Shown here piece after piece: positions 36,980-63,328 of a stretch of 64,000 nucleotides of DNA. The position numbers and the translations under genes are program-made. The DNA is from Oculina patagonica (lineage: Eukaryota): contig NC_135768.1 in assembly GCF_052425735.1 (NCBI RefSeq), positions 16,120,001 to 16,184,000 on the forward strand, written 5' to 3'. The first letter of the stretch is position 1. Every line of letters starts with the position of its first letter. The notes beneath the pieces were generated by a model, which saw only the letters and a list, made by a program, of their open reading frames with translations, was not told the origin of the DNA and did no database searches.

Positions 36980-37239
36980 CTAGCATTTAGTACTTTTGAG
37001 ATGTAAATCTTCTAAAGCTATCACTGATATATCATCATCATCTCTTGAGTGTAAGGTGGTCGAGCCTGACATCGTAGACAATCGCTTCTTGGTTCTTTTT
37101 GGCTCAAGCTTCGCGTAGTTCAGTATTTCCTTCTTGTGTTTCTTTCTCAGCCTAGCTAGAGTTTTTATCGAGTGTTGAAAGAAATCTTCCACGATTAATC
37201 TCATTTCTTCAATCATTTTGTCCTTGTGTACTGACAGAG
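36980..37239 (-). CDS. Terminal exon, cytoplasmic helical tail
   Basis: cag acceptor, phase 1 matches the preceding donor; ...MIEEMRLIVEDFF...HLKSTKC-stop. Confidence 0.8.
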
Positions 37240-39174
37240 CTGTGTAGAATATAAAAACAGACTTTAAGTTTAAAGTTGTTATATTTTAAGTTCAGGTTTT
37301 CTTAACCTTATTGAGCCTGGGCATTTTCTTTATTCGTGAGCTTGGGAGATACCCATGTATCGCAAAAGCATCCACATTATAGTAATCAATTTTAAAAGGC
37401 TTGTTAAGCATTCAGAATTTTTTTTAAGTGATAGTTATGTGCCAAAAATAAACCTCATATTACGCCAAAGTAACATATTTCATTCTAAAGTCCCCATCTT
37501 GGATTTTGAAACTTTTTACTATGTCACGGGAAAATCACCAAAACTCAATCTCACATTAAGGAAAAATGGGCCGTTGAAAAACTCAACATTTCGGTAAAAC
37601 ACCCTCTGAGAACATGGTTGCCATAATAAAATTAAATGACGTATTAATTAATAAAACTAACAATTGACACACCAAAATGAACCCCGCTTCAGGTTAAATA
37701 GGGTTAATGAAAAACGGCACGATATCTGTCACTTAAGAATGACATATACCAAGGACTTTCTGACCATATTTTGGCATGGTGTCAGTTGGTCAAATAATAA
37801 CACGCGATAAAGCATGTTTAATTTTTTTGGAGGGTGTGGGCTGGGGGATAGGGTGAAATGTTGGACGAGGTTGAACATGGTACTGTGATTTGTCAGTGGT
37901 GAGCAGATCAATAATTTGTTGAAGCGGAAAGGTTAGGCATAAAATTTATACGATATTTTGCGATAACCGACTTCAATAACTGCTTTATTATTCGATTTTT
38001 GAGTTCGATTTTGGTGTAGCAGACATTTCAAATCGCTTAGCGGCCATTCACCGACAATTCTTGTAAACGAACTGCCATTTTTCACAGAAGTGGACACAAC
38101 TACGCATGGTAGAATATTACTTGCAGCAAAATTACTATTTGAAGATAATGAGCATGAGCAGACCATCATTTTTAGCTATTTTTAGGCAGTTATTTGAAGA
38201 TCATGTGACGGGAGCTCGGCCAATTAAAAGGGAGAAAAATTTGCATCGAATCATAAATTAAATTACTGAATGGATTGAAGAAATTAAGACGGATTCCGCT
38301 AAAAGTTCGAGCAATGAGTGCAAAAATTAAGTACCAAAAACCTATTCATTGTACCGTAACATATAATATACTATTTGAATCTTCTCACTGAAATTTATTT
38401 GTCTTAATGACCCCGTGATTGAACTCTAAAGCATTCTCGAGAATATTAAAGTCAAACCTCGTAAAAATGTTTAAAACGCGCGCCATTTTGTTTTTAACTG
38501 GCGTGAAACGTCCGTTCTAATTGAAAAGTAGGTATTTTCAAATCCATTTTTCTCTCGCGGGGTCAGCTTGAGAGCTAAAGTTTTGATAGGTTTTTGTTAG
38601 CTGTACTCAAACTGTTACCATGCTATGAGATCTTTGTGGTAACTTTATTTTTGCCTGTATTGCTCGAATGTTCGGCGGGAACCATCTTAACTGTCAATCA
38701 GCCTAACATAAATTAGCATGATTTACAACTTACTGATGTCTTGTTGAACTTTTTGTCGTCCTCGTATTCTTCTCACTGCTTCATATAAGAGTCCCAAGAT
38801 AACACCTGTTGCTGCCAGTGCGCTTGTAATGAGGAGTGTATTGTGGAAAAGATCAGCATCACTATCAAACAAACCAGTCGAGATGTCCTGGACGACTTCT
38901 TCATCGGACAGCCCCGAACCCTGCGACATTGAAGATAAACGGGGGTGTAACCCAAGTGGAAGACTCTGTATGTAATTTTGTGCACAAAACTGAAAAACTT
39001 TTAACCTTAGCTATTAACCAAAAACATTGCATTCTCAATGGGCCCTTTGTAGCTAATGATCACATGGTAAAAAGTTAAACCTCGCTGGAGGGAAAGAAGC
39101 GCACTGGGACATTCAACACAAAGCGACTTTAATCAGTCATGCTTGGCTTTCCTTTGTTTTGATATTCCAGAGTG

Positions 39175-39208
<34 letters not shown>

Positions 39209-40091
39209 TGTGATCTTAAACTGCAAAGGGCCCACTGTATCCTTAAACCAAAATAATTGATATTTGATTTTTAACGGCTTTTCCGGCACGCATTTGGGTA
39301 CCATTTTATCGTTCACACTTCAAACTACGACTAATTTATTGCACAAGTTGCCATTGGAAATTGTAGCTTAACCACACCAGTGGTTTTTATTTCCTTCTCA
39401 GCTGTTATGTTGACGCATTGTGTCATGCAAACACTACTATCCAACAAGTAGAGGAGTCACGCAACAACTCAAATGAGCCGTTATCTGGGTCTTCACGTGT
39501 AACGCCACCCCGAGTGACAAGAGAATTGCGTGACGACCCAAAACAACATAATGAGAAAGGACTTCAGTTAGCTTAAAGCAGTTCTATGTGCAAATTTACA
39601 AACATTAAGAGTAACTGCTTGCTAAAACGTACCTTTATTGGCTCCACGAGCTCATCAACCCATTTAAAAATTTCCGCTTGATGGGAGCGCATGTAACCAT
39701 AGAAACAATGTCGAAGACGCATCGAGTCTCCACCAATAACAACTCCATAAGCTGTTTGATAATCAATGATCTGGGCCACTCGTATTGAGGGCTTGGAGAA
39801 AAGGTCTTTTTGCGTTCCTCCGGCGTAGGTGTCTATTAAAATCCCGTCTACCTCCCTGTTGACAAGAGCCTCGGAGAGCTCCTCCAAGGTGTGATAGTCT
39901 TTGTCTAAGTAGGAAAAGAAACACGGCTTTTAAAAATTGCATTGGGCCTTCGAGAGTGCAATTATTTCAGTGTTTAGTTTGTTTAAATCCCGTATAATTC
40001 GACTCCATTCAATAAAATAACGATGAAGCTCTTCCTAGCAGTTTGACTGTGATGGCAATGTGTCCTCCTCCTCATCCTTCTCCTCCTCCTT

Positions 40092-40141
<50 letters not shown>

Positions 40142-46100: not shown

Positions 46101-48363
46101 TGTTTATTCACATCTTAAGCCAGAATGGGCACAGAAGTGGTGTTTTAACAAACAGTACCCTTGCAGAGTACGAGAAAATGACCCGTGTAGATGGCACCTA
46201 TATGGTTGCAGTCAAAGATCACAAGACCTTTTCACACCATGGTCAAGCCAACCTTTGTTTTGACGAAAGTCTAAAAGCATGGGTGGACATTTATGTGAAA
46301 TGTGCAAGAAATCAAGTTGACGCAGGCGAAGAAAGCGATGCTCTGTTTTTAAATTGGAAAGGAGGGAAGATGTCAAGCAGTGATCTTTCACCAGCATTAA
46401 CCAGTGCATGGAGAAAGTCTGGTATGATTGGGAACGACACACGCATATCTGGGACTCTTATGAGGAAGTCCTGCACAACTGCCGTTCGTAACCACAATAA
46501 AGAGGTCAAGGGGAGTGTTGCCGCTCACATGGCACACAGTGAGCGTACGGCAGACAAGCATTATCATCTACTTCAGAAGCGTACCAACTCTGCCTTTGCA
46601 GCCAGGCAGTTAACTACCATTATGCATGGCAGTTCGTCTCCTGCTGTATCATCACATGAAAGAAAAGGTGATCCTGAGTCTATTGATGAGCAAGACCTAA
46701 CACCTACGCCACTTGCACGGCAGAGCTGGACAGAAGAAGAAGAAAAAGCAGTCCAGGAAGTTTTTGCAGACCAGATAAGCCGCCAGTCAATTACTATGCG
46801 AGAAGTATTGGCACTTAAGGAGACCCATCCACTGCTCAAAAATTCCGAAAACAAAAGACTGCTTGATAAAATAAGAGGATTATATCGGTACAAGAAAACT
46901 GATGGTGAATGTCTGGAAGACAAGCAGAGAAGTGATGATGCTGTTCAGGATAGCGATGGCAACTCAATAATAGGTCCGTCTACAAATCAAAGTAAAACAA
47001 GAGTTTTTGAAGAGGAAGAGGTCACCTTGTTCAAAGAATTTTTTAAGGACATGATTCAGAGGGGTGAGAAGATAGAGCAAAAGGTTGTGGTACAGCGATT
47101 GAAAGAGAATGGCCACGGACACATTTATGAAAAATACACCAAGCAAAAAGTGACCGATAAAATTAGAGGTCTACGTTTGACAAACATCAGGCAATGGAGA
47201 CAGTAATCATCAAGCATTGAGAAACATTCGAACAAAGACATTTATTTTTATTTATTGTTGAATAATCACTTGATACGTTGATATTATAGTTAGTTGCGGT
47301 GGCGCGGAAACCGTGAGGTGTTTGACATTGAGGCCACTTTGACGTTCTTAAGGACCTGTTCATTTCTTTCTTGACTAGTGTATTCGATGCTTTTTTTTAG
47401 GATTTCTATGCGATAGAAAAATAAGTTAAAGATGAATTTTGTTTCTAAATTCTCAAGGTACTGATTTTGTAAAGTAACATTAGTACTAAGTAAATTGTCC
47501 GTAGAAAAAATTGTGAAAAGTACAGAACCGGAAAGTAACTAATACCAGTTAGTTTGACACTTATTTAGGCAGGGAAGTAGTTGTCGCCACATGGAACTCT
47601 GGGAAGCAGTTGAACCAAAAGGTTAAGTTTGCATTATTGTAGATCAGTCAATTACTTGATATATCGTGTTAATATTACAGTTACGTGCGGCCACGTTTAT
47701 TAAGGCCATATTAGGCTATTTTTCCAGGAACGCTTTTCCTGATGATAAAAAGGCTACGTTCAGTTAATTCTGTTGCTCAAACAAATCTGAACAAGTAACA
47801 GGCATTATCATTAACTCTACATATTAGCCTTGTTTTGAAATGTTTTTTCCCTAGATATTGTTGTTATGAAATAAAAACAAAAAAATACTATGCCGAGTTT
47901 ATTTCTATATATACAACTTTTATCTAAAAGTATTGCATCAAACTTTGTCTTGAATAATTCATCGATAGAGAGCTGCAACTGCAAAGAAAGGTTGACAGAG
48001 TTCAAACATGAAAACTATTCAGGATTTGACACGGGATCTGTACGCTAAAACTAAATGCTTCAAAATCACTTTCTTAGTTGTCTTAACATCACAAAGGACA
48101 AATCTAGAGCAAACGCAGGGAATAGTTTGGTCTCCAAATCCGCAAGTCGTGAAGCCCACACAAAAGTCGTTTAGCCCACACAAAAAGTCGCTCAGTCCAC
48201 ATAAGGGTCGTTAAGTCAACTTGGCTGAGTCGCTCAGTCCACACAAGGGTCGTTAAGTCAACTTGGCCAAGTCGCTTAGTCAACAGAAGGTTGTTAAGTC
48301 CACATTTTTTAGTCGTCAAGTCCACAAACAAAGGCGCAAAATCCACAATCCATATAATCATCA

Positions 48364-48416
<53 letters not shown>

Positions 48417-51400
48417 ATCAATCTTTTGAGCGCTAGGCGACGCATAGGGCCTCCAAAATATTCCGCCACTTGGTCCGGTCATGTACCGCATTTCGGGCCC
48501 CACCCAATGTTAGATGAACTGACGCCAGCTCTTTTTGTCTTCCAAGCGTCGTACTTCCCATCATTTATTGGATAGAAGTTTATACGACAATAAGAAAGTT
48601 AGTTTACCACTTTTAAAAAATAACTTTATAGGGAAAACACAAAAACGACCTACCCTTGCTCATGAGCGCATTCCTCCTAACTCCGAGATTGTATTCTGGT
48701 GAGCCATGAATCGCTCCTATCTGAAAAATTATAAGTTACAGGAAGGTGAAAATATAAGAAAATGCTGCTGGCTTTTGCGAGAATAAGAATTTTGAAGTGG
48801 ACAGGTTGAACCTTGGTAGAAAAAGTTTCAAGTTTCAGAATTGGCGTAGTATAAAAACCACTTTAATTTTAAAATAATTTCACTTATCAGGTCACATGTA
48901 CCTTCGATCCATATATGGTGGTTTCACTGTCTGAAGTAATAGTCGTTAATGCGGTCGTCAAAGCTCCCATGGTCACTGAGATGATGACCAGTCCTGTTAG
49001 TACCCAGCCTACAGCAAAAATGCGACCAAGGTGGCTCATGGGAGTGCGATCACCATAGCTAGAAGAAGAAGGAGTTTGGTCATTTGATGGTCAAAAATGG
49101 CGGAAAGATCATAGCCCCCGTCTCTATTCATTTTTGACCGTCTGTTGTCACGTGATTAAACAATTTGCATTCACGCAACAACGTGAGCTCACTTTAATCG
49201 CTGATGAAGACTGTGCGAGACAGTCGAAAGCTAAGAACCTTTGTCAGTAACTTAGGAAATTTCCTTGATATTAGAAAAAAGAACGCTTTTTTGGGTTGAA
49301 TAGGGGACGAATTAAACTAAGTCGGCCTTTTCATAAAAGTTTCCTATAACCTAAGGCAGTAGAACGCAAAAGTTAACGGGCCAAAACAATGCACCTAACA
49401 CCCAAAAAGTCAATATAATTACACTTGTTGGCAAGTTACTATACATGTATTAGGTATTGGGTATAAGATATCTTTTTGAAGAGCTTACCCGACAGTCGTC
49501 ATGGAAACAAAAGACCACCAAACTCCTTCCCATGTTCCGTGGATAAATGACGTCGGGAAGTGTTGGCTGTTCGAGTTTGCGTCCTGAAAGCAAAAAACAC
49601 AGAGAGAGAGTGTATTGTTACTAAAAATATATATAAAAGACATTCTTCAATTTTTAAGCACAGCGCAAAAAACCTGCTGAAAAGATCAAAGAAGAAAATA
49701 GAAAAAAACTAAAAACGAAGGAAAGCAATTATTTTGGTTCGTCTCTTTTTCATCTTCTTCACATCAGTAGTTCTTTCTCTTTTCTGTATTAATGTACAAT
49801 CAAAACATTTGTACGAGCACGGCCAAAGTTGTCGCGCCGTTGAAACAACACCATGCAAGCACTTCCCACAACGCAACCTTAGATATCTAAACAACCGTAG
49901 CCAAAAAAGGTGGAACGCTTACCCAAAAACGACACAATTACAGATACTTTACTCGAAAACTTTAACACGATAACATACAGATGTGTTTTTAGAGGTCCCC
50001 TTCCGCGTCTCAATGTTGAACCCCTTCAGGGTAAGAATCGTTTGTGAAATAAGTTTGGTAGATCAACATTGAGACGTTCAGGGGCGAGGAAAGGAAGAAA
50101 ATAAGTAACTGTGTCAACACTTTTGATGAGGATTGTAGCTCCTTTAAAACTAAAATTTTACCTTGTAGTTAAGAGCCCAGAGACCATGACATAACTCTTG
50201 TAAAATTTGTTTGTTCACAACCAAAGAAGGAAAAAAACTTACCAGAATCCACACTGTTACACCCGCTATGTAAGCCATCACCAAAGGTATCACTATAACA
50301 GGCCAGCACGCCAGGAGGGCATCAAACATGGCGTCCTTTACACCGGAAGTGTCCGAGTACACTATGAACGCGACGCCGGCGGATTCCACAAATGGCGCGT
50401 AACCCAGTCCTCCCTTGTAACTATCCTGCAACTTGTACCCGATGACTGGGAACGAGAAATCCGTCTGACCATTTATATTTTGTAAAAGGTCCTCGGATCG
50501 GTTTTGTTGCGCCGTGCCGTTATTTCCATTCCGCGTGAAGTCTAATGTGGATTGTCCGTGATCGAGACAGTCTCCACAGCAATGGTCAATTACCCCGGTC
50601 AATAATTTAGGTATGATTATACCAGGGGTGCGCAAGGAAGTCAGATTGACGTAGGGAGGGTAATTTATCCAGTTGGTTGTTAAGTTGGGACGGCAACGGC
50701 AAGTTTCTGTGAACAGAAAATAAATGTTTTTTAAGGAAAGTTATTCCCAAAACCGGCCCAGTTACAGGGGTTTTCTGTTATTTCAATAACCGTGCAAGGC
50801 CTAGGACGGTGTGGCGGGCATGTGCTTTTGGTGACGTCAACGCTCGCGATAGAGTCCAGACTTCTTTGAACCAAGAAGACTATATTGAACAGGAAGAAAA
50901 TGCAATTGCCGGAAAAATAGGGAATATTTAAATGCAAGGCTTTAGGTTTGCAGACCAATTTGTTCTGCACTATTGAGTGCGGGAGATCGCTGCCCTAAAG
51001 ACTTTTGTGTTTTATTGTTTCCTACTTTGGTGTAGTAATCCTCTCTACCAACTGGTCTACTACCATCAGTAACTTTAACCTGCGAGAGATCTCAGTGCAA
51101 GCACCTAAGAAACGACAGATCATGAACAGGAAATGAACATGGATTGGCCATACGATTAGAAGACCAACTGACTGCATTGCCCTGCAACCCTTCTGTTTCA
51201 ATCCGCAGTGTAATAGACAGATAGGGAAGACCGCGTAACAGCTGGAGGAGGGATACAGAACGCACTATTCAGTCTAATTTTAGCTATAGCAAAATTCAAG
51301 TTTAAATAAAGTTTAAGTATGTATATGTATGTATGTCAAAGGGCTACTCCTGGAAACAGATGGAACGCCTGGCCAGGGACAGAGGGGAGTGGAGGAGCTT

Positions 51401-54400
51401 TGTTAGTAGCCTATGCTTCGAAATGGAGTAGACAGGCTTCAGATCGGATGAGACCAGACCTTGAGGTAGTCTGGTGCATTGTGTAATCGACCTTAAAGTG
51501 ACCACTCTCCGAAACTTCCCTTCCATGACTGGTGGTATATCAAGAGAATGGCCCCTTTTTGGTTGATATAGTTTAATCCCATGTCCTTCCTATCGATAAA
51601 GAAATAAATCATTTCATACTTACTTAAAGGAGTTTATAACGTCCTATTATTTCATTACCGTGCTATACTAGGATTAATCTCAGCAGAAGTCCAAAAAGAA
51701 AGTTTTGACTGCCAAAAATTGCTATTTTACAATAACTTTAAGAATTTACAAGATTAATCTACATTCACTATTTGTAACTGACCTCCAAAGGTAACGCCCT
51801 GCGGCCCAGGCCCTTTGTTTGAGATGGCAGCGACGGTTATCCTGTAGATCACAAGCGGTTCAAGATTTTGCAATGTCATAAAAGTAGCTGCATGTCCAAC
51901 ATCTTGGCTAATCACGGGCTCAAATTCCACCGGCAAGTCACCAATGGCAACAGCTTGGTGCGTCACTCGATACCCCACGAGGCGACCGTGTGTAAATTCT
52001 TGAGGAATTGGGTCCCAGAAAATGGGTATGCTTGTCAAACTTGTCCGGTTATAAGATCTGACGTTTGATGGCGGTTTACTGGGTACTAGGAAAAGAAAAG
52101 AAAAAGAAACATGCGTTTTTGGTTCGTAAATGATGTCTCACTCACTTAACCCGCATAGTCTGCATCGTTCACCATTCTACTTCAAACATTTGACAATTTT
52201 AAACGAAGCACTTACTGTGTTTTTCCTGAAAACTGCTATAAATAAGGATTTTTTTCCAACAATTTGCCGGTAGTCATTTTTACTCCTGGGTGGAGAGAAG
52301 CACTGTGAGAGTAAAGTGTCTTTCACATGACCCCGGCCAGCGCTGGAACACAGAACTCTCGATTAAAAGTCTCAATTAAAAGTCCAGTGCACTGAGGTCC
52401 CACGTTTCCTTATTGAATGAGGTTTATTTAATTGAAGGTTACTTTAAAATTTACACAGCCTGGTAGAGCTCCCACTAATTTTGAAGTCTGAAATATGGTA
52501 AGCTTTTGAAGTAAGCCAGAAGGGAGAAGAAGACCGGGTCGACCAAAAACAACATGGAGGAGGATGGTTGAAGATGAAAGGCATACAGCTGGGTGGCAGG
52601 CATGGGCGAATGTCAGAGCCCTAGCAGCAAATCGTAGTGGGTAAAAAGAGAAGGTCAAAGCCTTATGTGTCTTATGGGATTGAGAGATATAGGTATATGT
52701 ACAGGTATATAACAACACTGTATTATATGCTTGCTCCAAATTTACTATGCAAATATAATTACAATCAAACTTTACGTAACTTACCATCTTCACCCGTCCA
52801 TGTGGTATATGAAGCAGAAATCCCTTCTCCAGCGTTGTTGAATGCCCACACTTCAACCGTGTACTCTGTTGCTTTCCGTAAATGCGTCAAAACCACAGAG
52901 AAATCTCTCTGTGTTATTACTGGGCTGGTACCATTGCTCGCGCCCCAATACCGGTAACGGTAGCCCCTGATGATACCGTTACGGTGCTCCGGGGGGACGT
53001 CCACCCAGTAGACCAGCAGGCTTTGCGAATCAAGTGCAGCAACACCGAAACGGGAGGGAGGGGCTGACGGGGCTGTAATTTGAATTCAAGAAGCGACTTT
53101 GCTCAGCAAAAGCGGTAGCAAACAATTAAACAGACAAACAAACACACAGACAGACACACACATAGACGGACAGGCAGATGGACGGTCAGACCGACGGTCA
53201 GACAGACAGGCACAGACGGGCCGACAGACAGATATACAGACAGACAGGCAGACAGACAGATAGAGAGACAGAATTAACAGACACAGCAGAAACAGACATA
53301 ACAGACAGAAAGAACAAAAACAAACGTAGACTGTCAAGAAATGAGTTGATAGGGGCGAGGTGCATGATGACGGTCCCCCGACCTCCGCCCCAGCAGATGT
53401 TTTGTTTTCGACCTTTCTTTATTAATTAAATAAGTTAGTGTTCGATTTGCAATTTTTGTTTATTTGATTACAGCGTCCACATTTAGCACAGCAGTGATAA
53501 ATACATTGACAAGTAAAGTGGTTAACTGATTTTTCATCTTTCTAAGACGTCAACAACAACAGTCCTTAAAAACGCATTATACAAACTTCTTCACCTTAAC
53601 TGTTTGATTTCAGAGCTGTGAAGACCACTTACTCACACATCAAAAAAAAAAAAAAAAAAAAATCAAAAATACTCCAGCATTTTCTGTATTGTAGTGTGTA
53701 ACCTTTGTTTTTATTTTAACCCTCGCCCCCGCCTCGATTAGTTGTCTTTACTAGTAGCGGAAGCGAACAGTCTTGTAACCATTCATGAAAAAACAAAGTT
53801 CAATAAAATTTAAAGTTCATGTTCAAGTTGTAATGAAGATAGCAGACGAAAAACTGAACTACGGTATCTATTGTTATTATTTTACTTAATAATACTCTCC
53901 TCTTACCTGCCTCCCATGTTTGCGCATATACAGGGGTGGTGTAGTTGCCGTCTTCTGTACTAAAAGCTGCAATTTGCACACCATACAAAGTGAACGGCCT
54001 GAGGCCAGTAATAGTCGCTTCAATGTCGTTCCTGCCCGCTGTAATATCCATTAGGTGATGCGTATTAGAAACAGGAAAGTACAAAACTCGATATCCGTGA
54101 AGACTCCGTGCATCCACCACGGAAATTGGGCTCCAGGTCACGTGTATTGTAGACGACCCTGTGGCAGAAGCTGTAGCGTTCATGGGGGTTTGTTCAGGAG
54201 CTGGGGAGAGTAAAAATAGAAAACCATTGTCAAGATTGAACTTCAAAAGATGTCACGATTACGATTGACACTTTTACTCGTACATATAGCTGATTTGCGC
54301 AACTCAACTTTTGACTTTTGTTTTATGTACCGCAAAAGTTGACAGGGGGCGGGGTGGGGGAGTACTCATTGGAGGATTGGAGGTGACAATAAAAAGTAAT

Positions 54401-57400
54401 TTTGTGCTTTAAAGGGTACTAAGTTACGTCGTTTCCTTGTTTATGGATTGCCATGATCTACCATCTAGGATAGGGGAAGGGCTTAATAAAATAAGGAATA
54501 AGGAACTTCTTAAAAATGAGCTTACAGAGGGAGTCTGATTAAAAAGAAGGGAGGGGTGGGGGGTTAGAGCGTGCTATTATGGTAAATTTGCAACCAAATC
54601 TTCTGGGATTATTATTGCAGGCGAGAGAAAGAGCTACTGTGAGAGTAAAGTTTTCTTGCCCGAGAATATAACACAATGGTATAATAAACCCGTCCGAACG
54701 CTTGATATCGATGGAAACCAATGCGCTAACAATTAGAACACCGCGCCACCTAATGACTATTTCGCAAATTATTGTAACATTCACGGCGCTCCGCGTCTTA
54801 CCTGGAGCACCAGTAGAAACCTTAACAAATGCACTCCACGGACCAAATCCCTTCCGAGTAAAGGCTCGCGCTTGTAGACTGTAGTTAGAATAAACGTTCA
54901 ATGCCCCGAAAGACGCAGAAAGGCTGGAGCTCTGTGCGGTTGTAACGTTTAAAGGGATTCCATGATCATCGGCAATTGTTACTTGATATCCCCGGATGAT
55001 GCCTTTGCGAAGTTCTTTTGTCACCGGAAGCCAAGATAGTGTAACGCTAGTGGTGCTGGTAGCACTTCCGGTCAAGTTGTTTGGAGGACCCTCGGGAACT
55101 GGAGAAGAGAAAGAAACAAGTTGNNNNNNNNNNNNNNNNNNNNNNNNNNNNNNNNNNNNNNNNNNNNNNNNNNNNNNNNNNNNNNNNNNNNNNNNNNNNN
55201 NNNNNNNNNNNNNNNNNNNNNNNNNNNNNNNNNNNNNNNNNNNNNNNNNNNNNNNNNNNNNNNNNNNNNNNNNNNNNNNNNNNNNNNNNNNNNNNNNNNN
55301 NNNTCAGTCCGTCCGTACGTCATTCAGTCAGTCAACCTGTTAAACCGTCCTGCATAAGTCCATTCATCCGTCAGTCAGTCAGTCAGTCAGTCAGTCAGTC
55401 AGTCAGTCAGTAAGGTGAATTACCATAACATGCAGTGCGCCTGACTTCAAATATGATCTCTTACTACAACTACGATAAGAGTTACATAACCTCTGACCCT
55501 ACTTGCAAGAGCTCTCACCTCCTTCATCTGTCCAACTCTGTGTTTCACTAAAGTTTCCAGTCCCCACTCGTGTATACCCCGCTACAGACACGTTGTACAG
55601 TGTGTAAGTCTCAAGATTTGTTATGTTTCTGCTCGTGCTCAAGTCGTGTTCTAGTTCTCTGAAGTTTGATGCGTTGGTATCTTCAGCTTTGATAATGCGC
55701 AATACATAACCTAATAGTATCCCAGGTACACTTGAGGACGTTATCTGCTGCCACGTGACCAGGATGCTGGAGGAACTAGAATTGGTTGCGCTTACTTGCA
55801 GAGGAGGAGCTCTGGGGACTAGAAAAATATGGCAATAATTGAAACGGCAATCAAAAACTGATAAGTTTGTCACTGCCGCAGATTTTTTACTATATGCGTA
55901 ACAGTTTGCGCAATAGTTATCTGTCATGCTTATCAGATAGTCTAAATAAGACAATTTCTTTGTTATGTTAGTCCGGATTTTCCAATGCCACAATTGGTGC
56001 TTCGTTTTTGTTAGTAATAAAACGGTCAGACCGGTACAATTTTTTGGGCCCGAATATCATGCATTCTCTTGAACCCGGGGTCTCCGGATTACAAGTTAAG
56101 GGCCCTAACCACAAAGCATCCGCCTTCTAAATAAAACATGTGTTAAGAAACCGCTGGTAATATTAGAACAATCATTTTAAGATCTTTGTTTAATTAGACT
56201 AAGAGCTGGCGTAAGCTCTGCATAGATTCGGGTAGTGTCTCTGATTGGCTGTCTCTCAGTTTTGAATTTTCGCGCGTAAGTAACAACCAACCAGAGACAC
56301 TACACGGATAACTGTAGACCTACGTCATCGGTACGAAATTTTCCGGTGAAATTTCAGACGTCTTTCGAGCGGGGAAAACATTTAAGACGAATTCCACTGA
56401 AAGTTCGAGCAAAAAGTGCAAAAAAATAATTGCCAAAAATCAACTTATAGCACAGTAACATTTTTATACCATTTGAAACATCTCACTGTAATTTATTTCT
56501 CCAGTTGATCCCGCTAACAATTTGTTAAGTATTCTCGAGAAAGTTAATGTCAAATCTCGTAAGAAAATCGTAAAACGCGTGCTGTTCTGTTTTAAACTGA
56601 CGTGAAACGTCCATTTTAACTAAAATTTGGATAACTTCAAATTCGTTTTTTTCTTGCGGGGTCAGCTTGAGAGCTAAAATTTTGATAAGCTCTTCTGAAC
56701 TGTATTAAAACTGTGACCATGCTATGAGGTCTTTTTGATAACTTGAAATTTGCCTTTTTTGCTCGAATGTTCAGCGGAAACTGTCTCAACTCGTAAAGAG
56801 GGCCGTTTGATTACTGAGGTTATTAATGTTTGTAGTGCAAGAACACTTTACGCGTCATCAAGAAATGTTTATTTTCTTTACTTTATGCTTTCTGAGTGAA
56901 TCTTACCTCCTTCGTCAGTATAAACATAAATAACGGGACTCTTGGGCCCAGCCGCGACTGTAAAAAAGAACGCTTCTATGGAGTAATTTGCGTATTCATC
57001 CAGCCTTGTCAATGTTTTCTTGATAACATTATTGTTCGAGACTGCTCTTCGTCTTCTGTTGTGCTGTATAGTAAAGGTGTGAGTATAAACAGTAGAATTA
57101 ACCACATCAACTCTGAACACCCTGAAGATGTATTTGCGGATAATCCCGTTAAGCTGTTCTGGCGAGTAGGCCTGGAACTCAACTGTAATTGATGTGGAGC
57201 TTGCGTTGTACCCGGTCAAGTTTGCAGGCGGTAGGTCTGGAGCTGAGTATTAAAGAACGCAAATATATAAACGTTTTGTTTTTGGATCTAATAATATTTA
57301 TGTTATTTCACTCGAGTCAAATAACGAACGTCCATAGAGCAGACATGGACTATTAGCGACTTTTCATGTCCACTTCGTCATATTTCTCACCGAAAAAATA

Positions 57401-60400
57401 ATTTGGTCAACATACTACCATTTGCGTTCATCCATGAAGCGTGAACAATTTAACGCGTAGTTTTACTCTTAAAACCCCAACGGTTTTGTCTGTTACGTGT
57501 CACTTTTGACCAATGAAACGTTTGCGGTCAGGTCGCGAAATTGACAACGGTTTGGCGAAATACAATCATGTTTTCTTCACGAGCTATCAATAAATTTTTC
57601 AAGATTTGCCCGCTTACTTCGATGAAAGTCTGCTCAGAAAATATTTAAATAGAGGATAATACATGGTTGCGCGGAGATATGAAATTTATCTTCGAGTGTT
57701 CAAATCGATAGCTCACGAGTGAGCGCAGCGAACGAGTGAGATATCGGATTTGAACACGAGAAGATAAATTTCATATCTCCAAGCAACCATGTATTATTCT
57801 GTTTATTATATAAACCTACTAATTACGATGTTTTTGACGATTTTCCGAAGGTTTCCGACCATTTTCCGAAGATTTCCGAAAATTTTCAAAATGTTGTCCG
57901 AAGGTTGTACGAATGATTCCGAAAATTTCCGAAAATTTCCGAAGTTTTCCGAAGATTTCCGAAGATTGCCGAGGAAGATCCGAAGATGTTTCGACTTAAT
58001 ATCGATTTACTTTGGCTCATTGAGCATTGCAACATGGCAAACTCTGCGAGATGATTGGTCAAAAATGATATCACACATGTGTGGATATCATTTTTATCCA
58101 CACATGTGTGATACCATTTTTCTCGATTTGCTACCACTCGCTAAAACACTGCAGTTTATATAATAAATAACAATGGAGAGGAGAGAATTCGAAGTTGACA
58201 AGTTTGGAAAGAATTATCGTCCAGGAGTCGTTTTAGAACAAGATTTTCAATGCTTGATTCATTTCTCGGAAGTGTCACGTTTTCAGATAAAACCGTTAAC
58301 GTTTTAAAAGTAAAACTACGCGCTGAATTGTTCACGCTTCATGGATGAACGCAAATGGTAGTAGTTTGACTGGGTATTTTCTATAACCATTAATTAAAAC
58401 AAGGAGCCCAAAAGTATGACCACTTTTAGTTTATTCCTCGGCTCCTGATTAGATAATGACTACACGAAAGAATGTGAAATGGTCACACTTATGGGCTCCT
58501 TGCTGTAAGATAAAAATCGAAATTCTTGTCTTTAATTTTCCCAAGTTCTAATGCCATGTTCTTGAAGCGTCTGTAGTTGTCGTTGTTTTACCTTTATAAC
58601 GAAAATCCTAGCAATAACTAGAAACAAGAATTTAAGGACTAAATAGAGAAGAATCGTGATGATTTTGAGAAGAAAGGAAAGCTACCAAGTCTGCAAATAA
58701 TTACGCACCATCCCCTTCTCGCTCAAAAATGTAAAGATCCATCTTTAACCCTCAATTTTTAACCCTTTATCAATTATAGAGGAGAGAGAAGAGCTTATGA
58801 GAATTAATGAAATGATCACCAAAGAGAAATTGTCTTGACCTTTTAACAAATTTTTCCAACAATGCTATAAGAAATGTATGGAGATCAGCCAGGAGAAATT
58901 GTATGTGGATATTGGGGCTTAAAGTGTTAACACTCACCATCTTCATCAGTGCGACACGTGATTACATTCGTGAAATTTGATTGGCCCTTGCTGTTGGCGG
59001 CGGCTCCTTTGATGCTGTACTCTTGGTATTTTGACAAGTTTCTAACTTCGCCATTCAGACTTGCTCCATCGAATGTTACCGTAATAAGATCGCCTGTTAA
59101 TACGTCAGTAAAGTTGAATATATACATGGTGATTATTCCGAGACGCAACGGTTCGGGGACTGGACTCCAAGTGATGTTTATACTTGTGGAACTTGTGGCG
59201 TTAGCTGAGATGATCACAGGCCCACCAAGTGGAGCTACAACATAACAATGAAAATGGTTATTGGTATCTAGCCTTAAGCCGTGGCTAACGAGCGAACGAG
59301 GAAACGAAGCAATGAGCGATGGAAGGAGTAAATGAGCGAACGAACCAAAGAACGAAAAAAGAACGAGCGAACGAGCGAATGATAGAACGAGCGAAGGAAC
59401 GAGCAAAAGAGCTAAGGAGCGAGCGAGTAAACGAACGAACGAGCAAACGAGCGAATGAATTGAACGAGTGAGCTAATGAGCGAGCGAACGAACGAACAAA
59501 CAAAAGAATGAGCGAACTAACGAGTGAGCGAACGAAGAAATGAGCAAACGCGCGAACGAGTAAATGAGCGAACTAGTAAACGAATGAAAAATCGAGTGAA
59601 TTATGAAAAAAAAGAAAAACGGCGAATCTACAATAGCTACTTTTTGGCCACAGTAGGCGTTGGTACCCGAGTTGGTAAAACAGCGTTTAGTTCAGGACCT
59701 CGTAGGCGTAGTATTAAAGTAGATTATACTGAATATCTACTCGAATCTACTTGCATTGTTGATTATTGCTACAAAAAAAAAAGGCCATCCCCTTTTATTT
59801 TCTTTTATCGTCGTATGTGTTTTCTGATTTTGGGTCGGTCGGTCGGAATAAATAAACAAACAAACAAACAAACAGAAAAGTGGATAAGGAGTCTGGAACT
59901 AGGAGGCCCGGTACCTCAGCATAATATCCGTGGAGCCTGGAAACAAGAAGACATGGTTACAAAGTCAACATGGCGGCAATGGAGGTAAAAAAAATCGACG
60001 TCGTGGTTAAACTCAAACGAGAACAGCGTAAAAGGGATGAATTTGTCATTGCCTTCATTACCTTCTGCATAACATTTTTTTTAAACGCGAAAATCTGGGT
60101 CGGTCGGACGACGCTAAACAGAGAAAAAAAGGAATGGCCAAATTAAAAAAAAAAGAAAATAAAAAAGGCATAAATTAATAATAAACCAAACAAATCCAGC
60201 AACTTTCCACTCACTGTCTTCATCTGTGAAACATGTTACGGCCTCGCTGAAATTTCCAGGTCCTTGCTCGTTGAAGGCAGACACCATAATTTCGTATTCG
60301 GTGAATTTTTCCAGGTGTTTTAAGGTTACATTTAAAGTTTTGTTACAGGTAATCGTGGTGTCCCACTGCCGAGATGCATTTTGATGAGGTCTGAACAACA

Positions 60401-62717
60401 CTTCGTAACCAGTCAGCTTGATGTCTGGAATAGCGGGTGGCTGCCACTGTACCACGATACTGGACGAGCTGGTATTGTAGGCTCTAACATTTGCTGGTGT
60501 TTCGGTAATTGCTAGGCAAACAAAAATAAGTGCTTGTCATTCACATCAGAAGGTGAAACAAGAAAAATAGAAAGGATAACATTTTTATTCTGAGTCCCCG
60601 AAGGGAATCGAACCCATGGCCTCCCAGATACCGGTTGGGCGCTCTAACCAACTGAGCTACGAGAGACTCGTGGTGAGCTTGGCCATTTACTAGGTTGATA
60701 TGTGACACGCGTCCTGCATACTGCTAGCATCAGCAATGTTGAATTCATCAAGTGTGTAGTAAATAATAACGATGGTAAATTTTAAGTTCGGTGATTAAAA
60801 ATGAAGACGAATTTTTCAACAATGACACGAGCATGGGACAAACAAAAATTTATTTTGCTCGTGTCATTGTGGAAAAATTCATCTTCATTATTTATCACCG
60901 AGCTTAAAATTTAAAATTTTTCTTTGTCCCATGCTCGTGTCATTGCTGAAAAATTAATGTTCATTGGTTGTCGAGATAGGTACCATAACATATAACCATA
61001 ACCATAACAAATAGCCAATCTCGCCGGTCCCTCTTAACCAGTCCGGTCATTAGCTATTGTTTTATCTGGAGAACTCATTGATCAGACAGTGTGGGAGCCG
61101 TGCGTGACATCGTGATATTGCGAGATCGCGAGATAGATCCGATATTACACATAGGCAGGATCACGGACGACCATTAAATTAAAAGCATTGTAAAAATAGC
61201 CCACATTTTCAGGTGGTACATCAAAAATGGCCACCAATTAAATGCAAGCCTAGCACTTCAGCAAAGGACACTNNNNNNNNNNNNNNNNNNNNNNNNNNNN
61301 NNNNNNNNNNNNNNNNNNNNNNNNNNNNNNNNNNNNNNNNNNNNNNNNNNNNNNNNNNNNNNNNNNNNNNNNNNNNNNNNNNNNNNNNNNNNNNNNNNNN
61401 NNNNNNNNNNNNTAAAAACGGGCAAACAAGCGGCCCTCGGATTACAAATTACAACTAAATTAATATATACATTTTACAAAGTGCCATTTCATGCAGTGCC
61501 AGCCTTGCATTTAATTGGTTTTCCTAGACGTTACAGTGACGTCTGTAATAAGCATGTCTACAAAAAGAGATCCCGCAATAAGAAGTTCTGGGTTTTACTC
61601 TGCGGTATTTGGTTCCCTGCATTCAGAGTTTCATATATTGGCCACCAATGGTGTTAGGTGCACAAAGCATAATGACTAAGAGGGACCCTTTGACCAATGT
61701 TTAACTACATACGTTGTCCGGGCGTGGTGAAGAGTTGAACGCTGCTTTTATTCCCAAAGTTTGGGCTGGCCAGAGCACGTTGTACACAGTACTTGTATGT
61801 ACTGGACTCTTGAAGATCGCAAATCTCTACTTGATTTATCGAGGAGCCTACCATCTTCGTTTTTGATAACGAAGATTGGTCACTGAAGTCATAGTACACT
61901 ACATATCCTGCAAAAAGTGCAGACTTCTCTGGTGGTACACCATTCCACTGGATTGTAACGCACGAAGACGTTACACTTACTACTGATATGTTCTCAGGAG
62001 GTGCAACTGGGAGAGAAAGACACGGACACAATTAGTCACGTCATAAGGGAAGGACAATTATTTTTTTGGAGGAGGGGGGATCAAAATTGTTTCAAGACAA
62101 CTTTTCCGGCTGCATCTTCCTGCAGACGAAGTTTTTTGATGTCTGCAAACAATTTATTTGGGCTTTTTGCTTTTGCAAACAAATTTTATCAGGATTTTTG
62201 ATCCCCCCTCAAAAAATAATGGTCCATCCCTAATTAAAGGCCATTTGCTCACATGTAAAACCTTTTTCACATTACAAGCTCAAAGGTAAAGTGAGCTCTG
62301 AAGTGAACATTGCCTATTTTGCTCAAAAAAGTAATACAAATTTACCCCCTACCAAAAAAGGGATATCTTAAATTCTTTTAATGATCCTCTCAGATCTGCA
62401 ACACACGTTGGCAGCATTTATAAGCCCCTTGTAAAATTCATTAATAATTCATGAGGGTGCAAACCAATCCCAGCACAGTATTCAGATCACATGTACACAG
62501 CTGTAAACCCCCATACAAATCAATCAATAGAATTAACTTTTGATACAAACTCCTGCTCAGCTAATTAGTATTTATTAACTTTTGATACAGATCTCTACTG
62601 ATTCGCATAATAATACTTTGCATTCAATTTATTGTTTTCATTTCACAAGTAGAATAAAATATTCGCGTCCGATCTGTATGGGCGTTTACAATGGCGAGCC
62701 GATAGGCTCGCCATTGT

Positions 62718-62760: not shown

Positions 62761-63328
62761 AAAGGAGAAGTTCACTCCAGAATGGCCATTTATTTTCTTT
62801 ACGCCAATAAAATATTTATACAAAGATATGTTATTCACCAAAATTTCAGCTTCCAACGAGCGCCAAAACCCCATAAAATCTTCAGCTGAGCGCCGCCATC
62901 TTGTAGCTGGTAATGTATGCGTGACGTCAAAGAGCTCAGCCAGAAATTTTGCGGGAAAATATAAATACTCGAAACGCCTTGTTTCTTTGTAGTGGCTTTT
63001 GTTTGTCAAAATGCCTGTTTTTGCGACTTACCAAAAGTCGTGGTGACAGCAATGATCTCACTCTGCTTTCCCGCTCCAGCCATAGTATAGGCAGCTACGG
63101 ATATGTTGTACGTAACCCATGGTTCTAATCCTGGTAAAGTGACGGAGTTCACGTGTTCGTTGATGATGGTAACATTGACTAGTTCGCTTCCTGCTTGTTC
63201 GATGTAAACCTCAAATCCCTGAAAAATGTCCCAAATTTCCAGAGGGAGGCTAGGATCGTCCCATGCGATAACTATGCTTGTATCACTGACAGTTGTTGTG
63301 CGAACATTGGTCGGAGCTTCGTTTGGAA
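36980..63328 (-). CDS. Multi-exon gene (5'-partial): FN3-repeat array fused to iGluR-topology channel with K+ selectivity filter (GluR0/AvGluR1-like core)
   Basis: 17 AG/GT-bounded exons splice in frame to ~1500 aa ending at TAG 36982-36980. Order: 10 phase-1/1 FN3 exons, S1+M1, pore (WWSFVSMTTVG|YGD), M3, S2, M4, cytoplasmic tail. No ATG or signal peptide in the window. Confidence 0.88.
38288..38686. mobile_element. TTAA-flanked MITE; second copy at ~56386-56786
   Basis: ttaa|gacggattccgctaaaagttcgagcaa ... ttgctcgaatgttcggcgggaaccatc|ttaa. Confidence 0.78.
38734..38920 (-). CDS. M4 helix exon (alternative in-frame acceptor would start at 38965)
   Basis: cag/gtaagt, phase 0-1; TLLITSALAATGVILGLLYEAV followed by basic RRIRGRQK. 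Confidence 0.82.
39633..39904 (-). CDS. S2 lobe exon
   Basis: tag/gtacgt, phase 1-0; YHTLEELSEALVNREVDGILID...YGVVIGG. Confidence 0.88.
40739..41110. repeat. ~180-bp imperfect tandem duplication inside the YR element
   Basis: 40739-40917 and 40930-41110 both run atgtgcgga.gtcgaaaa...gaggtcgtat.ttccaca. Confidence 0.85.
42181..42291 (+). CDS. Candidate first coding exon of the YR gene
   Basis: ATG..cag|gttagt, 37 codons, phase 0, joins in frame to the acceptor at 44525; no homology support. Confidence 0.3.
43192..43626. repeat. 69-bp G-rich minisatellite (~6 units; dimer of 35+34 bp subunits) inside the YR element
   Basis: Unit atgagaggtgtggctttctatggtggggttgtaattagagacagggtttactacagggtgggtgttggt; degenerate monomers upstream from ~43040. 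Confidence 0.92.
44525..47206 (+). CDS. C2H2 zinc finger / tyrosine recombinase / tandem Myb-like repeat protein
   Basis: Open frame from acceptor ttag|44525 (first ATG 44618). Zn fingers CPLRC..HLRSVH and CNEC..HLQKQH; YR motifs GHRSG, KDHKT, TLMRK, HMAH, KHY; two C-terminal helical repeats (WTEEEEKAV..DKIRG, FEEEEVTLF..DKIRG). Confidence 0.85.
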   Translation, partial: AERHIWALKGLFKSVTKRDPPATESDSSLTEMENETEESNVEAARVFTKKTKEKVRGKKVKIVLSNKRKATSTKCYSKEAKVKKVVGQSEKEDQSCSAESDSESGEDEHEEEDSSPSESGSGEDKVQVVKEIKSQVRNKFECPLRCGAKVYQLPRHLRSVHGWKAERARNAVNRFDMRHDQRNSKKPKAVREKRKQKYCNECGRKQRYLSKHLQKQHGLMKGTKQYRRALKESRPVYLWKDSLKSQVVDVESDTVSEFDETAVKTTNTKGKEKKRQNSTSLKTSLAGWQGIEIASISSAEDDKNSTMEDVQELEGTEAEDAEYLDYDEDESGGAEFNTTAFELNQDSRVMLDKFEKWILSPDGGEKDPKPASLVVRQVQKVLIMLGTENIESLFDKALIRDKFYPESRATVKAGTTISYLHSLRKFYTFAMTEDDVGISQECRKVADALYKKCGEWCKSLSKDVKRRFWEKQEEDLARLITPEKIQEFTKTEFARNQVKTLGQLIDNREKPPALGQQEYCDLRNFLFIHILSQNGHRSGVLTNSTLAEYEKMTRVDGTYMVAVKDHKTFSHHGQANLCFDESLKAWVDIYVKCARNQVDAGEESDALFLNWKGGKMSSSDLSPALTSAWRKSGMIGNDTRISGTLMRKSCTTAVRNHNKEVKGSVAAHMAHSERTADKHYHLLQKRTNSAFAARQLTTIMHGSSSPAVSSHERKGDPESIDEQDLTPTPLARQSWTEEEEKAVQEVFADQISRQSITMREVLALKETHPLLKNSENKRLLDKIRGLYRYKKTDGECLEDKQRSDDAVQDSDGNSIIGPSTNQSKTRVFEEEEVTLFKEFFKDMIQRGEKIEQKVVVQRLKENGHGHIYEKYTKQKVTDKIRGLRLTNIRQWRQ
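48145..48326. repeat. Subterminal ~20-bp repeat array (gtcgyYhagtcMac) at right end of the YR element
   Basis: About 9 spaced copies, e.g. gtcgctcagtccac, gtcgttaagtcaac, gtcgtcaagtccac. Confidence 0.8.
48358..48552 (-). mobile_element. RTE-type LINE 3' fragment with (GAT/GAC)n tail
   Basis: Minus strand encodes DRTKWRNILEALC, an RTE-like C-terminus, followed by a gatgacgatgac tail that continues at 40062-40140 beyond the YR element. Confidence 0.7.
48654..48720 (-). CDS. S2 start exon
   Basis: cag/gtaggt, phase 0-1; IGAIHGSPEYNLGVRRNALMSK. Confidence 0.85.
48902..49058 (-). CDS. Filter end and M3 helix exon
   Basis: tag/gtacat, phase 2-0; YGDRTPMSHLGRIFAVGWVLTGLVIISVTMGALTTALTTITSDSETTIYGSK. 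Confidence 0.92.
49489..49583 (-). CDS. Pore-helix exon
   Basis: cag/gtaagc, phase 0-2; DANSNSQHFPTSFIHGTWEGVWWSFVSMTTVG (too short for the ORF track). Confidence 0.92.
50243..50706 (-). CDS. Exon encoding S1 (periplasmic-binding-protein-like lobe) and M1 helix
   Basis: cag/gtaagt, phase 1-0; NYPPYV...DFSFPV...PFVESAGVAFIV followed by hydrophobic WPVIVIPLVMAYIAGVTVWIL. Confidence 0.88.
51100..51440 (+). mobile_element. RTE-type LINE 3' fragment
   Basis: WIGHTIRR, GRPRNSWRR, LARDRGEWRSFVSSLC. Confidence 0.75.
51783..52085 (-). CDS. FN3 exon 10
   Basis: tag/gtcagt, 303 bp; IFWDPI...NLEPLVIYRITVAA. Confidence 0.9.
52265..52400 (-). mobile_element. tRNA-headed SINE fragment; another at ~54620-54750
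   Basis: Shared gagag..gc.actgtgagagtaaagt.tctt core. Confidence 0.6.
52512..52695 (+). mobile_element. RTE-type LINE 3' fragment
   Basis: PEGRRRPGRPKTTWRRMVE...LAANRSG*KEKVKALC. Confidence 0.75.
52785..53072 (-). CDS. FN3 exon 9
   Basis: cag/gtaagt, 288 bp; NGIIRGY...HLRKATEYTVEVWAFN. Confidence 0.9.
53125..53330. repeat. Degenerate (GACA)n microsatellite
   Basis: cagacagacaga repeats. Confidence 0.85.
53907..54200 (-). CDS. FN3 exon 8
   Basis: cag/gtaaga, 294 bp; VTWSPI...GLRPFTLYGVQIAAF. Confidence 0.9.
54802..55098 (-). CDS. FN3 exon 7
   Basis: cag/gtaaga, 297 bp; LSWLPV...ALNVYSNYSLQARAFT. Confidence 0.9.
55124..55303. other. Assembly gap (N run)
   Basis: N characters; could hide additional FN3 exons. 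Confidence 0.99.
55519..55818 (-). CDS. FN3 exon 6
   Basis: tag/gtgaga, 300 bp; VTWQQ...NLETYTLYNVSVAGYT. Confidence 0.9.
56907..57242 (-). CDS. FN3 exon 5 (with RRRR insert)
   Basis: cag/gtaaga, 336 bp; ...HNRRRRAVS...RLDEYANYSI. Confidence 0.9.
57415..58361. mobile_element. TA-flanked TIR element (~65-bp TIRs) with a nested hairpin-headed repeat
   Basis: ta|ctaccatttgcgttcatccatgaagcgtgaacaatt ... aattgttcacgcttcatggatgaacgcaaatggtag|ta. Confidence 0.85.
58938..59234 (-). CDS. FN3 exon 4
   Basis: tag/gtgagt, 297 bp; ITWSPV...NLSKYQEYSI. Confidence 0.9.
59285..59595. repeat. Degenerate (GAAC/GAGC)n microsatellite
   Basis: gaacgagcgaacg repeats. Confidence 0.85.
60215..60511 (-). CDS. FN3 exon 3
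   Basis: tag/gtgagt, 297 bp; VQWQPP...HLEKFTEYEIMVSAFN. Confidence 0.9.
61273..61411. other. Assembly gap (N run)
   Basis: N characters. Confidence 0.99.
61713..62006 (-). CDS. FN3 exon 2
   Basis: cag/gtatgt, 294 bp; APPENISV...QW...DLQESSTY. Confidence 0.85.
62047..62230. mobile_element. Harbinger-type MITE (TAA TSD)
   Basis: taa|gggaaggacaattatttt ... aaaataatggtccatccc|taa. Confidence 0.8.
63032..63328 (-). CDS. FN3 exon 1 (in window)
   Basis: cag/gtaagt, 297 bp, phase 1-1; VPNEAPTNV...W...LPGLEPWVTYNISVAAYT. Confidence 0.9.

Follow-up and report, generated by a model that had tools for sequence, protein, structure and literature searches.

Bacterial channels of the GluR0 type, such as Slr1257 of Synechocystis and GluR0 of Nostoc (SBP_bac_3 plus Ion_trans_2), consist of two lobe segments, S1 and S2, arranged around a pore module (S1-M1-P-M3-S2) with an inverted TxVGYGD filter; they have two helices and a pore loop, no further membrane helix (M4) and no extra N-terminal domains. 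The ionotropic glutamate receptors (iGluRs), which include the AMPA, kainate, NMDA, delta, epsilon and lambda types and the plant GLRs, form the second described system with which the gene reported here can be compared. This gene lies in a 64,000-nucleotide stretch of DNA of the coral Oculina patagonica (RefSeq assembly GCF_052425735.1, contig NC_135768.1, positions 16,120,001 to 16,184,000; hereafter the window), and it joins an array of FN3 domains to a channel module that shares both the layout and the filter of the GluR0 type. In contrast to GluR0, it is an animal gene with introns, and it adds M4, a long cytoplasmic helix and at least ten FN3 domains before S1, which in orthologues are part of a giant mosaic. 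The family to which it belongs also lacks the ligand arginine of the bacterial proteins and has four invariant cysteines in S1.

Compared with iGluRs, the coral family has neither the LIVBP/ANF-type N-terminal domain nor the SYTANLAAF motif, and a full K+ filter replaces the Q/R/N-site pore loop; by sequence, its pore resembles K+ channels, not iGluRs. The whole iGluR ligand-binding and transmembrane part (LBD-TMD), M4 included, superposes on the model of the family core, and the Pfam model Lig_chan also matches M1-M3 in many members. The rotifer receptor AvGluR1 was reported in 2011 as a eukaryotic iGluR subunit that carries the TXVGYG K+ signature and an M4 within a standard eukaryotic iGluR architecture, as described in PMC12332018. 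The coral family has the K+ signature and M4 in common with AvGluR1, but its outer part is of the FN3 or adhesion type and the amino-acid-binding arginine is missing.

Like the product of the window gene, sidekick, PTPRQ and contactin are type-I membrane proteins with long FN3 arrays in tandem. Unlike them, neither the window gene nor the relatives that bear their names contain an Ig array or a phosphatase, and the C-terminal third is instead a channel with three membrane helices and a pore loop. The names sidekick-1, PTPRQ and contactin given to such relatives read as misnomers, because the C-termini are the channel module. FN3 arrays, the GluR0/iGluR module and the K+ pore are each known, while their combination and the family itself are undescribed in the literature searched. 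Searches by concept, accession and locus name, which were not exhaustive, found no paper on the family, and it is unmentioned in the broad metazoan iGluR phylogenies examined. The initial annotation of the window, made by a model from the letters and their open reading frames (ORFs), knew of no characterised channel of this architecture, and our search likewise found no functional description.

Gene structure

The window holds the 3' part of the gene, 17 exons on the minus strand spanning 63328 to 36980 (26 kb), and the 5' end of the gene lies outside it (Table 1). A six-frame reading of 36.5-64 kb revealed a minus-strand row of open segments. When single exons were compared with Pfam, fn3 was matched in 10/10 upstream segments (E 1e-16 to 2.7e-4), eight of which reach the gathering score of 25 bits, with E4 (21.5) and E5 (22.6) slightly short of it, and Ion_trans_2 was matched by two short pore segments. 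All 16 introns are GT-AG in a splice-site scan, and the spliced frame is open over 1500 codons (1500 residues) up to a stop at 36982-36980. The product contains, in order, ten FN3 domains, an ETCRC...CCGDC motif, S1, M1, a pore helix with the filter WWSFVSMTTVGYGD, M3 (SVTMGALTTALT), S2, M4 and a helical cytoplasmic tail. The filter is read across the E12/E13 joint, and the filter and M3 strings are identical to those quoted in the initial annotation.

The uninterrupted frame proposed there was correct in outline, but the splice on which it was based had missed one exon. Because E13 ends in phase 0 and the following S2 exon begins in phase 1, the two do not join, and a 67-nt exon (48720-48654, IGAIHGSPEYNLGVRRNALMSK) was added, which closes the frame. 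Among the AG...GT candidates that lead from phase 0 to phase 1, it alone resembles an S2 strand, and once it is included, the alignment of the spliced core to the Nematostella orthologue shows hardly any gaps in 455 columns.

Both runs of N in the span are intronic, one between E6 and E7 (55124-55303) and one between E2 and E3 (61273-61412). Beside the former, the acceptor and pyrimidine tract of E7 (55099-55123) can be read. The reading frame is independent of the length of the gaps, because all FN3 exons are phase 1-1. In a single blastp high-scoring segment pair, residues 5-1453 of the model align with residues 2597-4051 of Nematostella LOC5501224 (1449 versus 1455 residues), and residues 5-1416 are collinear with 2644-4057 of the Actinia orthologue, with lengths that agree within six residues. 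In tblastn, E6 and E7 map to adjoining domains of the Nematostella orthologue (3102-3200 and 3205-3313). Given this collinearity with both orthologues, loss of an FN3 exon in either gap was rejected, and no domain seems to be hidden there; the gap sequence itself was left unfilled.

Transcription and selective constraint

RNA runs were found with the S1 exon as query (a 3.2-kb query gave weak matches only, 0.07), and Logan contigs of the runs X1, X2, X4 and X5 were mapped on window positions 48800-54300. The contigs skip exactly the introns 53907/53072, 52785/52085, 51783/50706, 50242/49582 and 49489/49058, and thus cross FN3-FN3, FN3-S1, S1-P and P-M3 joints; several introns have zero contig depth. 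The joint between the FN3 array and the channel, 51783/50706, is crossed by single contigs in three runs (X2, X4 and X5), with 64-255 nt on the shorter side. Two of these contigs, from X2 (2510 nt) and X5 (1730 nt), contain FN3 exons, S1-M1, the pore and M3 together and continue 3' for 700-790 nt. The FN3 and channel exons are therefore on one mRNA, as the initial annotation had proposed; it had named separate transcripts for the two parts as the outcome that would speak against a fusion, and the contigs show the opposite.

Per exon, the contigs differ from the window by 3-11%, so that their source is not this allele but a close paralogue or a related coral. Among the 36 differences listed, 27 are synonymous and 9 non-synonymous, an excess of the kind that purifying selection produces; the ratio for the pore and M3 exons is 10 to 2. 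The window gene is a real, spliced and selectively constrained coral gene. In the intron between E9 and E10, the contig word depth rises to 1200-6600 at 52112-52479 in each of the four runs, and many loose ends occur at 52285 and 52322; the probable cause is a dispersed repeat with high expression that does not belong to the channel gene.

Clamshell, pore and topology

The S1-M1-P-M3-S2 region is homologous to the bacterial GluR0 type. A profile search of a large protein set returned, as the next-best group after cnidarians, bacterial SBP_bac_3+Lig_chan+Ion_trans_2 proteins at 100-123 bits, with plain K+ channels at ~60 bits. An hhalign comparison of 28 family cores with 17 bacterial SBP_bac_3+Ion_trans_2 proteins gave a probability of 100% (E 2.5e-38) over 291 columns that cover all five segments. 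The S2 profile alone matches bacterial amino-acid-binding proteins and GluR0 cores (1IIT, 2PYY) and no animal iGluR.

Structure comparisons agree with this assignment. The AlphaFold2 (AF2) model of the Nematostella orthologue core has a mean predicted confidence (pLDDT) of 85.4, and Foldseek places the AMPA, NMDA and kainate LBD-TMD at the top (~450 columns, E ~1e-12). In VIA structure alignment, GluR0 cores rank first (2PYY, Z 19.6; 1II5, Z 19.3; root-mean-square deviation 2.5-2.9 A), with model residues 3..351 bridging the membrane insert, and residues 4..405, which include M4, overlay the NMDA/AMPA LBD-TMD at Z ~17.5. A shape search of the ESM Atlas returned, in this order, two cnidarian clusters, bacterial GluR0-like proteins and plant GLRs. 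These profiles and models identify S1 and S2 as a predicted type-II periplasmic-binding-protein clamshell that is split by the pore module. The GluR0-like layout with a TTVGYGD filter and the M4 helix, both of which the initial annotation had read from the translation, are borne out; M4 and the cytoplasmic helix follow S2 in the translation and in the AF2 model alike.

The pore is strongly conserved. In 28 cores from Hydra to corals, no variation occurs at G188 and D191 of the filter, and T186, Y189 and G190 reach 90% conservation or more. The WW of the pore helix and the pattern of M1 and M3 likewise show little or no change among at least 28 diverged cores, that of Hydra among them. Against PDB, the family profile matches the K+ channels LmK, KvAP, Kv1.x and KcsA at 1e-15 to 1e-11 in the pore only, and exon 13 alone reaches 27.3 bits for Ion_trans_2, in line with a pore helix and TxGYGD filter placed between M1 and M3 as in the K+ pore superfamily. 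Lig_chan scores 13.2 bits on window exon 13 (gathering score 30.8); among relatives it exceeds this score in P0219 (39.1), P0035 (34.3) and P0126 (33.1) and stays below it in the others, and the match covers M1-M3 only. The M3 of the window gene lacks the SYTANLAAF motif, and the family consensus there is G..TTSLT. Pfam found no ANF_receptor domain (the LIVBP-type N-terminal domain) in the scanned relatives or in the window exons, which exclude the 5' end of the gene. Both absences had been noted in the initial annotation.

The putative ligand site differs from that of GluR0. The bacterial ligand arginine (R120 of A2), nearly invariant in the bacterial group, aligns with a conserved Tyr, and the site contains no Arg; in most members a Gln precedes this Tyr by three residues, and the S1 ligand Thr is also replaced. 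Of the GluR0 ligand triad (S1 Arg, Thr, S2 Asp/Glu), the S2 Asp is kept: both the NS-x-EY strand of S2 and the Asp in GAL-x-D are conserved to at least 90%. To judge from these residues, the clamshell fold is intact and is not a canonical amino-acid site. Since the arginine that holds the alpha-carboxylate of such ligands is lost, a free amino acid in its customary pose is unlikely to be the agonist. At the start of S1, four cysteines (ETCxC, CCxxC) are invariant in the 28 cores and are positioned at the FN3-S1 joint.

Nematostella and Hydra proteins have hydrophobic N-termini that, read by eye, resemble signal peptides. For this reason, the outer part and S1/S2 would lie outside the cell, with the pore loop entering from the cytoplasm and the tail inside, in a type-I membrane protein. 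S1/S2 outside and a pore loop entering from the cytoplasm are the topology of GluR0 and iGluRs (PMC13099474).

A cnidarian family with varied outer parts

The architecture of the window gene is not a singular case. The gene belongs to a Cnidaria-wide multigene family that is unnamed or misnamed in public protein sets. An exhaustive HMMER search with the S1-M1 exon retrieved 376 cluster representatives at E<=1e-3, and the long relatives are annotated cnidarian proteins of Nematostella, Montipora, Actinia, Oculina, Pocillopora, Stylophora, Dendronephthya, Acropora, Porites and Hydra, which carry the database names "uncharacterized", "sidekick-1", "PTPRQ" or "contactin-3-like". In our searches the family was found in Cnidaria only, with at least 15 loci in Nematostella. 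The FN3-channel fusion also appears in independent annotations of Nematostella, Actinia, Oculina, Pocillopora, Stylophora, Dendronephthya, Acropora and Porites. The window core aligns end to end with the C-termini of its relatives and is 52% identical to that of LOC5501224. In a maximum-likelihood tree, it falls into a clade (support 100/97) with LOC5501224, the Actinia giant protein and two acroporid proteins (Acropora and Montipora). Members from Hydra and Nematostella with CUB and Ig domains form a supported clade (96/90), and the family therefore predates the split between Anthozoa and Medusozoa.

The outer parts vary widely within the family, from none (the core-only members P0219 of Actinia and P0220 of Pocillopora) through one or two FN3 domains or CUB+Ig to mosaics of up to ~4500 residues that combine pentraxin, LamG, fibrinogen-C, TLDc, discoidin, MAM, TSP1, SEA and FN3 domains. 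In LOC5501224 (4084 residues), the first ~2600 residues contain pentraxin, laminin-G, fibrinogen-C, TLDc, discoidin, MAM and SEA domains. Because of its orthology with this protein, the window gene probably encodes ~2600 more residues of lectin- or adhesion-type domains upstream, beyond the window. The proposal that a long FN3 rod replaces the N-terminal domain thus holds for the ten FN3 domains before S1, but the rod is probably not the whole outer part.

Several individual proteins deserve mention. SEA domains lie upstream of the FN3 rod in P0003 (LOC5501224; residues 2493-2552) and P0035 (Nematostella LOC116604538; ~838-850); the latter reads FRHGSVIATF, with a self-cleavage motif of the G-S-V type, and the Nematostella orthologue of the window gene has no GS. 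P0006 (Montipora capricornis XP_068752747) reads WW------SSGNWDG at the filter columns where the family has WWAFVTMTTVGYGD, which reflects either an exon called wrongly or a paralogue whose pore is dead. Two other proteins, P0241 (919 residues, JGI metagenome) and P0226 (545 residues, ENA), have Lig_chan and Ion_trans_2 pores, one of them with N-terminal EF-hands, and may represent further non-bacterial GluR0-like architectures. PF28033 was considered as a named model of the clamshell and rejected: it is absent from the core-only members and P0003, is present on FN3-rich relatives and is most likely another FN3-type model.

Proposed mechanism and alternatives

We favour the reading that the window contains a real gene for an FN3-GluR0-type channel with a tetrameric, clamshell-gated K+ pore, at a probability of roughly 0.72. 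The C-terminal 500 residues constitute a GluR0-type module, in which the S1/S2 clamshell is interrupted by an inverted two-helix K+ pore (M1, pore helix, TTVGYGD, M3) and followed by M4 and the long cytoplasmic helix. Four subunits would together form a K+-selective pore with its filter facing the cytoplasm. By analogy with GluR0 and iGluRs, movement of the clamshell would pull on the linkers of M3 and M1 and open the gate. If the pore is K+-selective, K+ efflux would hyperpolarise the cell, and the protein would therefore work as a receptor channel with an inhibitory effect. Specificity would come from the variable outer part, which meets S1 at the four invariant cysteines; this part could place or anchor the channel at matrix or at a cell contact, or act on the clamshell.

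Several observations weigh against this reading. A K+ signature is no guarantee of K+ selectivity, and the Montipora protein without a filter indicates that pore-dead members may exist. Identity between the RNA contigs and the window is ~89-97%, which leaves their origin at this locus unproven, and their mapping spans 5.5 kb of the gene (joints E8 to E13). The S1 family profile has no PDB match by sequence, and in single-exon PDB searches S1 gave only a chance match (E 1.4) and S2 none; the homology of S1 accordingly rests on the profile-profile and structure comparisons. A Pfam scan, for which the initial annotation had predicted fn3, Ion_trans_2 or Lig_chan, and PBP2, returned the first two, but the single S1 and S2 exons matched neither SBP nor Lig_chan-Glu_bd models, and M4 was likewise unrecognised.

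An artefact of the gene model, in which FN3 and channel exons belong to two neighbouring genes or the locus is a pseudogene, could draw on transcripts that do not represent the exact allele and on the two assembly gaps in the span. It is extremely improbable in view of the contigs that cross 51783/50706 in three runs, the matching phases over 1500 open codons, the fusion annotated independently in eight cnidarian genera and the excess of synonymous differences. Given a real gene, the protein might still be an adhesion receptor whose channel module is a leak channel, a scaffold or non-conducting. The pipeline names of its relatives and the Montipora relative without GYG would fit such a vestigial or constitutive pore, but near-invariance of GYGD, the pore-helix WW and the M1/M3 pattern in diverged cores, that of Hydra included, is unexpected of a vestige, as is the 10 to 2 ratio in the pore and M3 exons, and we regard this explanation as quite improbable.

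The remaining alternatives concern the stimulus, which may be a small molecule or else a macromolecular or mechanical input. The clamshell may bind a diffusible, non-canonical ligand, with gating that is chemical and not mechanical and an FN3/adhesion part that positions, clusters or assembles the channel like the N-terminal domain of iGluRs. This is a tentative reading, with a chance somewhat short of even: the retained NS-x-EY strand and Asp of S2 and the superposition of the predicted clamshell on glutamate-bound GluR0 cores speak for it, and core-only members argue that the core module can gate alone, whereas the S1 ligand Arg and Thr are replaced and S1 has diverged beyond any PDB sequence match. 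Alternatively, as the initial annotation had suggested, an outer part that engages matrix, a neighbouring cell or a macromolecule, or an FN3 rod under tension, could act on the clamshell via the cysteine-rich FN3-S1 joint and open or close the pore. The lost arginine, the invariant cysteines exactly at this joint and the matrix- or lectin-type outer parts (pentraxin, LamG, fibrinogen-C, discoidin, MAM, TSP1, CUB, Ig) argue for something other than amino-acid gating, and the SEA domains upstream of the rod, with a G-S-V-I-A cleavage-type motif in one paralogue, would suit such a tether. This idea is drawn from architecture, however; core-only and one-FN3 members exist, and in iGluRs the gate is pulled by a lobe other than the upper one, to which the outer part is attached, so that adhesion or force gating appears rather unlikely. 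We are similarly doubtful of its broader form, a receptor-channel class of Cnidaria's own in which an adhesion- or lectin-type outer part, linked via a putatively cysteine-stapled clamshell to an inverted K+ pore, would open an inhibitory K+ conductance on contact with matrix, cell, prey or microbe, or under FN3 tension.

Features of the window

Table 1. Exons of the FN3-channel gene and assembly gaps, in window coordinates
Feature	Position	Strand	Evidence
Exon 1 seen in window, FN3 domain 1; gene runs on 5'	63032..63328	-	fn3 1.9e-15; AG acceptor 63328, GT donor 63032, phase 1-1; aligns to Nematostella LOC5501224 (P0003) 2567-2687
Exon 2, FN3 domain 2	61713..62006	-	fn3 2.9e-8; GT-AG, phase 1-1
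Assembly gap in E2/E3 intron	61273..61412	.	N run; between donor 61713 and acceptor 60511
Exon 3, FN3 domain 3	60215..60511	-	fn3 1e-16; GT-AG
Exon 4, FN3 domain 4	58938..59234	-	fn3 2.7e-4, 21.5 bits (gathering score 25); GT-AG; collinear with orthologue
Exon 5, FN3 domain 5	56907..57242	-	fn3 1.3e-4, 22.6 bits (gathering score 25); tblastn to P0003 2988-3100, E 4.9e-14
Exon 6, FN3 domain 6	55519..55818	-	fn3 1.4e-11; tblastn to P0003 3102-3200
Assembly gap in E6/E7 intron	55124..55303	.	N run; E7 acceptor 55098 and pyrimidine tract read
Exon 7, FN3 domain 7	54802..55098	-	fn3 1.4e-11; donor CCAGgtaaga at 54802
Exon 8, FN3 domain 8	53907..54200	-	fn3 2.9e-10; RNA joint 53907/53072 in X1, X2, X5
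Exon 9, FN3 domain 9	52785..53072	-	fn3 3.8e-10; RNA joints 53907/53072, 52785/52085
Exon 10, FN3 domain 10, last before channel	51783..52085	-	fn3 6.6e-8; RNA joint 51783/50706 in X2, X4, X5
Exon 11, ETCRC...CCGDC cysteine motif, S1 lobe, M1	50243..50706	-	family search, 376 representatives at E<=1e-3; language-model features match Lig_chan-Glu_bd at 0.93; inside hhalign match to bacterial GluR0-like S1; RNA joints on both sides
Exon 12, M1-P linker, pore helix, first half of filter (WWSFVSMTTVG)	49489..49583	-	Ion_trans_2; RNA joints 50242/49582, 49489/49058
Exon 13, filter YGD and M3 (IFAVGWVLTGLVIISVTMGALTTALT)	48902..49058	-	Ion_trans_2 3.5e-6, 27.3 bits (cutoff 22.5)
Exon 14, first S2 strand, IGAIHGSPEYNLGVRRNALMSK	48654..48720	-	phase fit; gap-poor core alignment to P0003
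Exon 15, rest of S2 lobe	39633..39904	-	tblastn to P0003 3858-3952, E 2.5e-22; S2 profile matches bacterial amino-acid-binding proteins and GluR0 core
Exon 16, S2-M4 linker and M4 (LLITSALAATGVILGLLYEAV)	38734..38920	-	hydrophobic helix; modelled helix from residue 373 overlays iGluR M4
Exon 17, cytoplasmic helical tail, conserved KH..E motif, stop codon	36980..37239	-	translation and family alignment

The 8.7-kb intron between exons 14 and 15 (48653-39905) holds an intact ORF of 865 residues (44609-47206, plus strand) that is antisense to the channel gene. Because of its weak matches to tyrosine recombinases (Phage_integrase) and to ROS/MucR-type zinc fingers, it is classed as a Crypton-like element. 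It is flanked by the microsatellites (ATC)n at 40092-40141 and (TCATCG)n at 48358-48420, and the same intron contains a 69-bp minisatellite at 43147-43649 (7.3 copies, 91% identity) with an open frame on both strands.

Elsewhere in the window, two further mobile elements were identified on the plus strand. A pol-type ORF of 1242 residues at 17905-21633 belongs to a Ty3/Gypsy-like long terminal repeat retrotransposon and contains protease, reverse transcriptase, RNase H, an integrase zinc-binding domain and an integrase core. A non-LTR element resembling long interspersed nuclear elements (LINE-like) at 13948-16170 consists of two adjoining ORFs, the second of which (14746-16170) contains RVT_1, and it is preceded by a minisatellite at ~13298-13732.

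Implications

The animal family described here, which numbers at least 15 loci in Nematostella and ranges from Hydra to reef corals, combines a K+ filter, a GluR0-like clamshell and a eukaryotic M4 with interchangeable adhesion modules in place of the usual N-terminal domain. It has been overlooked by domain-based surveys of iGluRs and K+ channels because the clamshell escapes Pfam and annotation pipelines name the proteins by their FN3 repeats. To our knowledge, bacterial GluR0 and a single rotifer receptor are the known witnesses of the history of this module; the family opens the addition of M4 and outer domains to the ancestral module to direct experiment, and on the broader reading given above, it would also be a living link, with M4 gained, from bacterial GluR0 to the iGluRs of animals. 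An adhesion- or tether-gated K+ channel of the iGluR type, if true, would be a gating mode undescribed for any channel family. For the animals themselves, the family predicts inhibitory, K+-based signalling gated by ligand or contact in organisms without a centralised nervous system.

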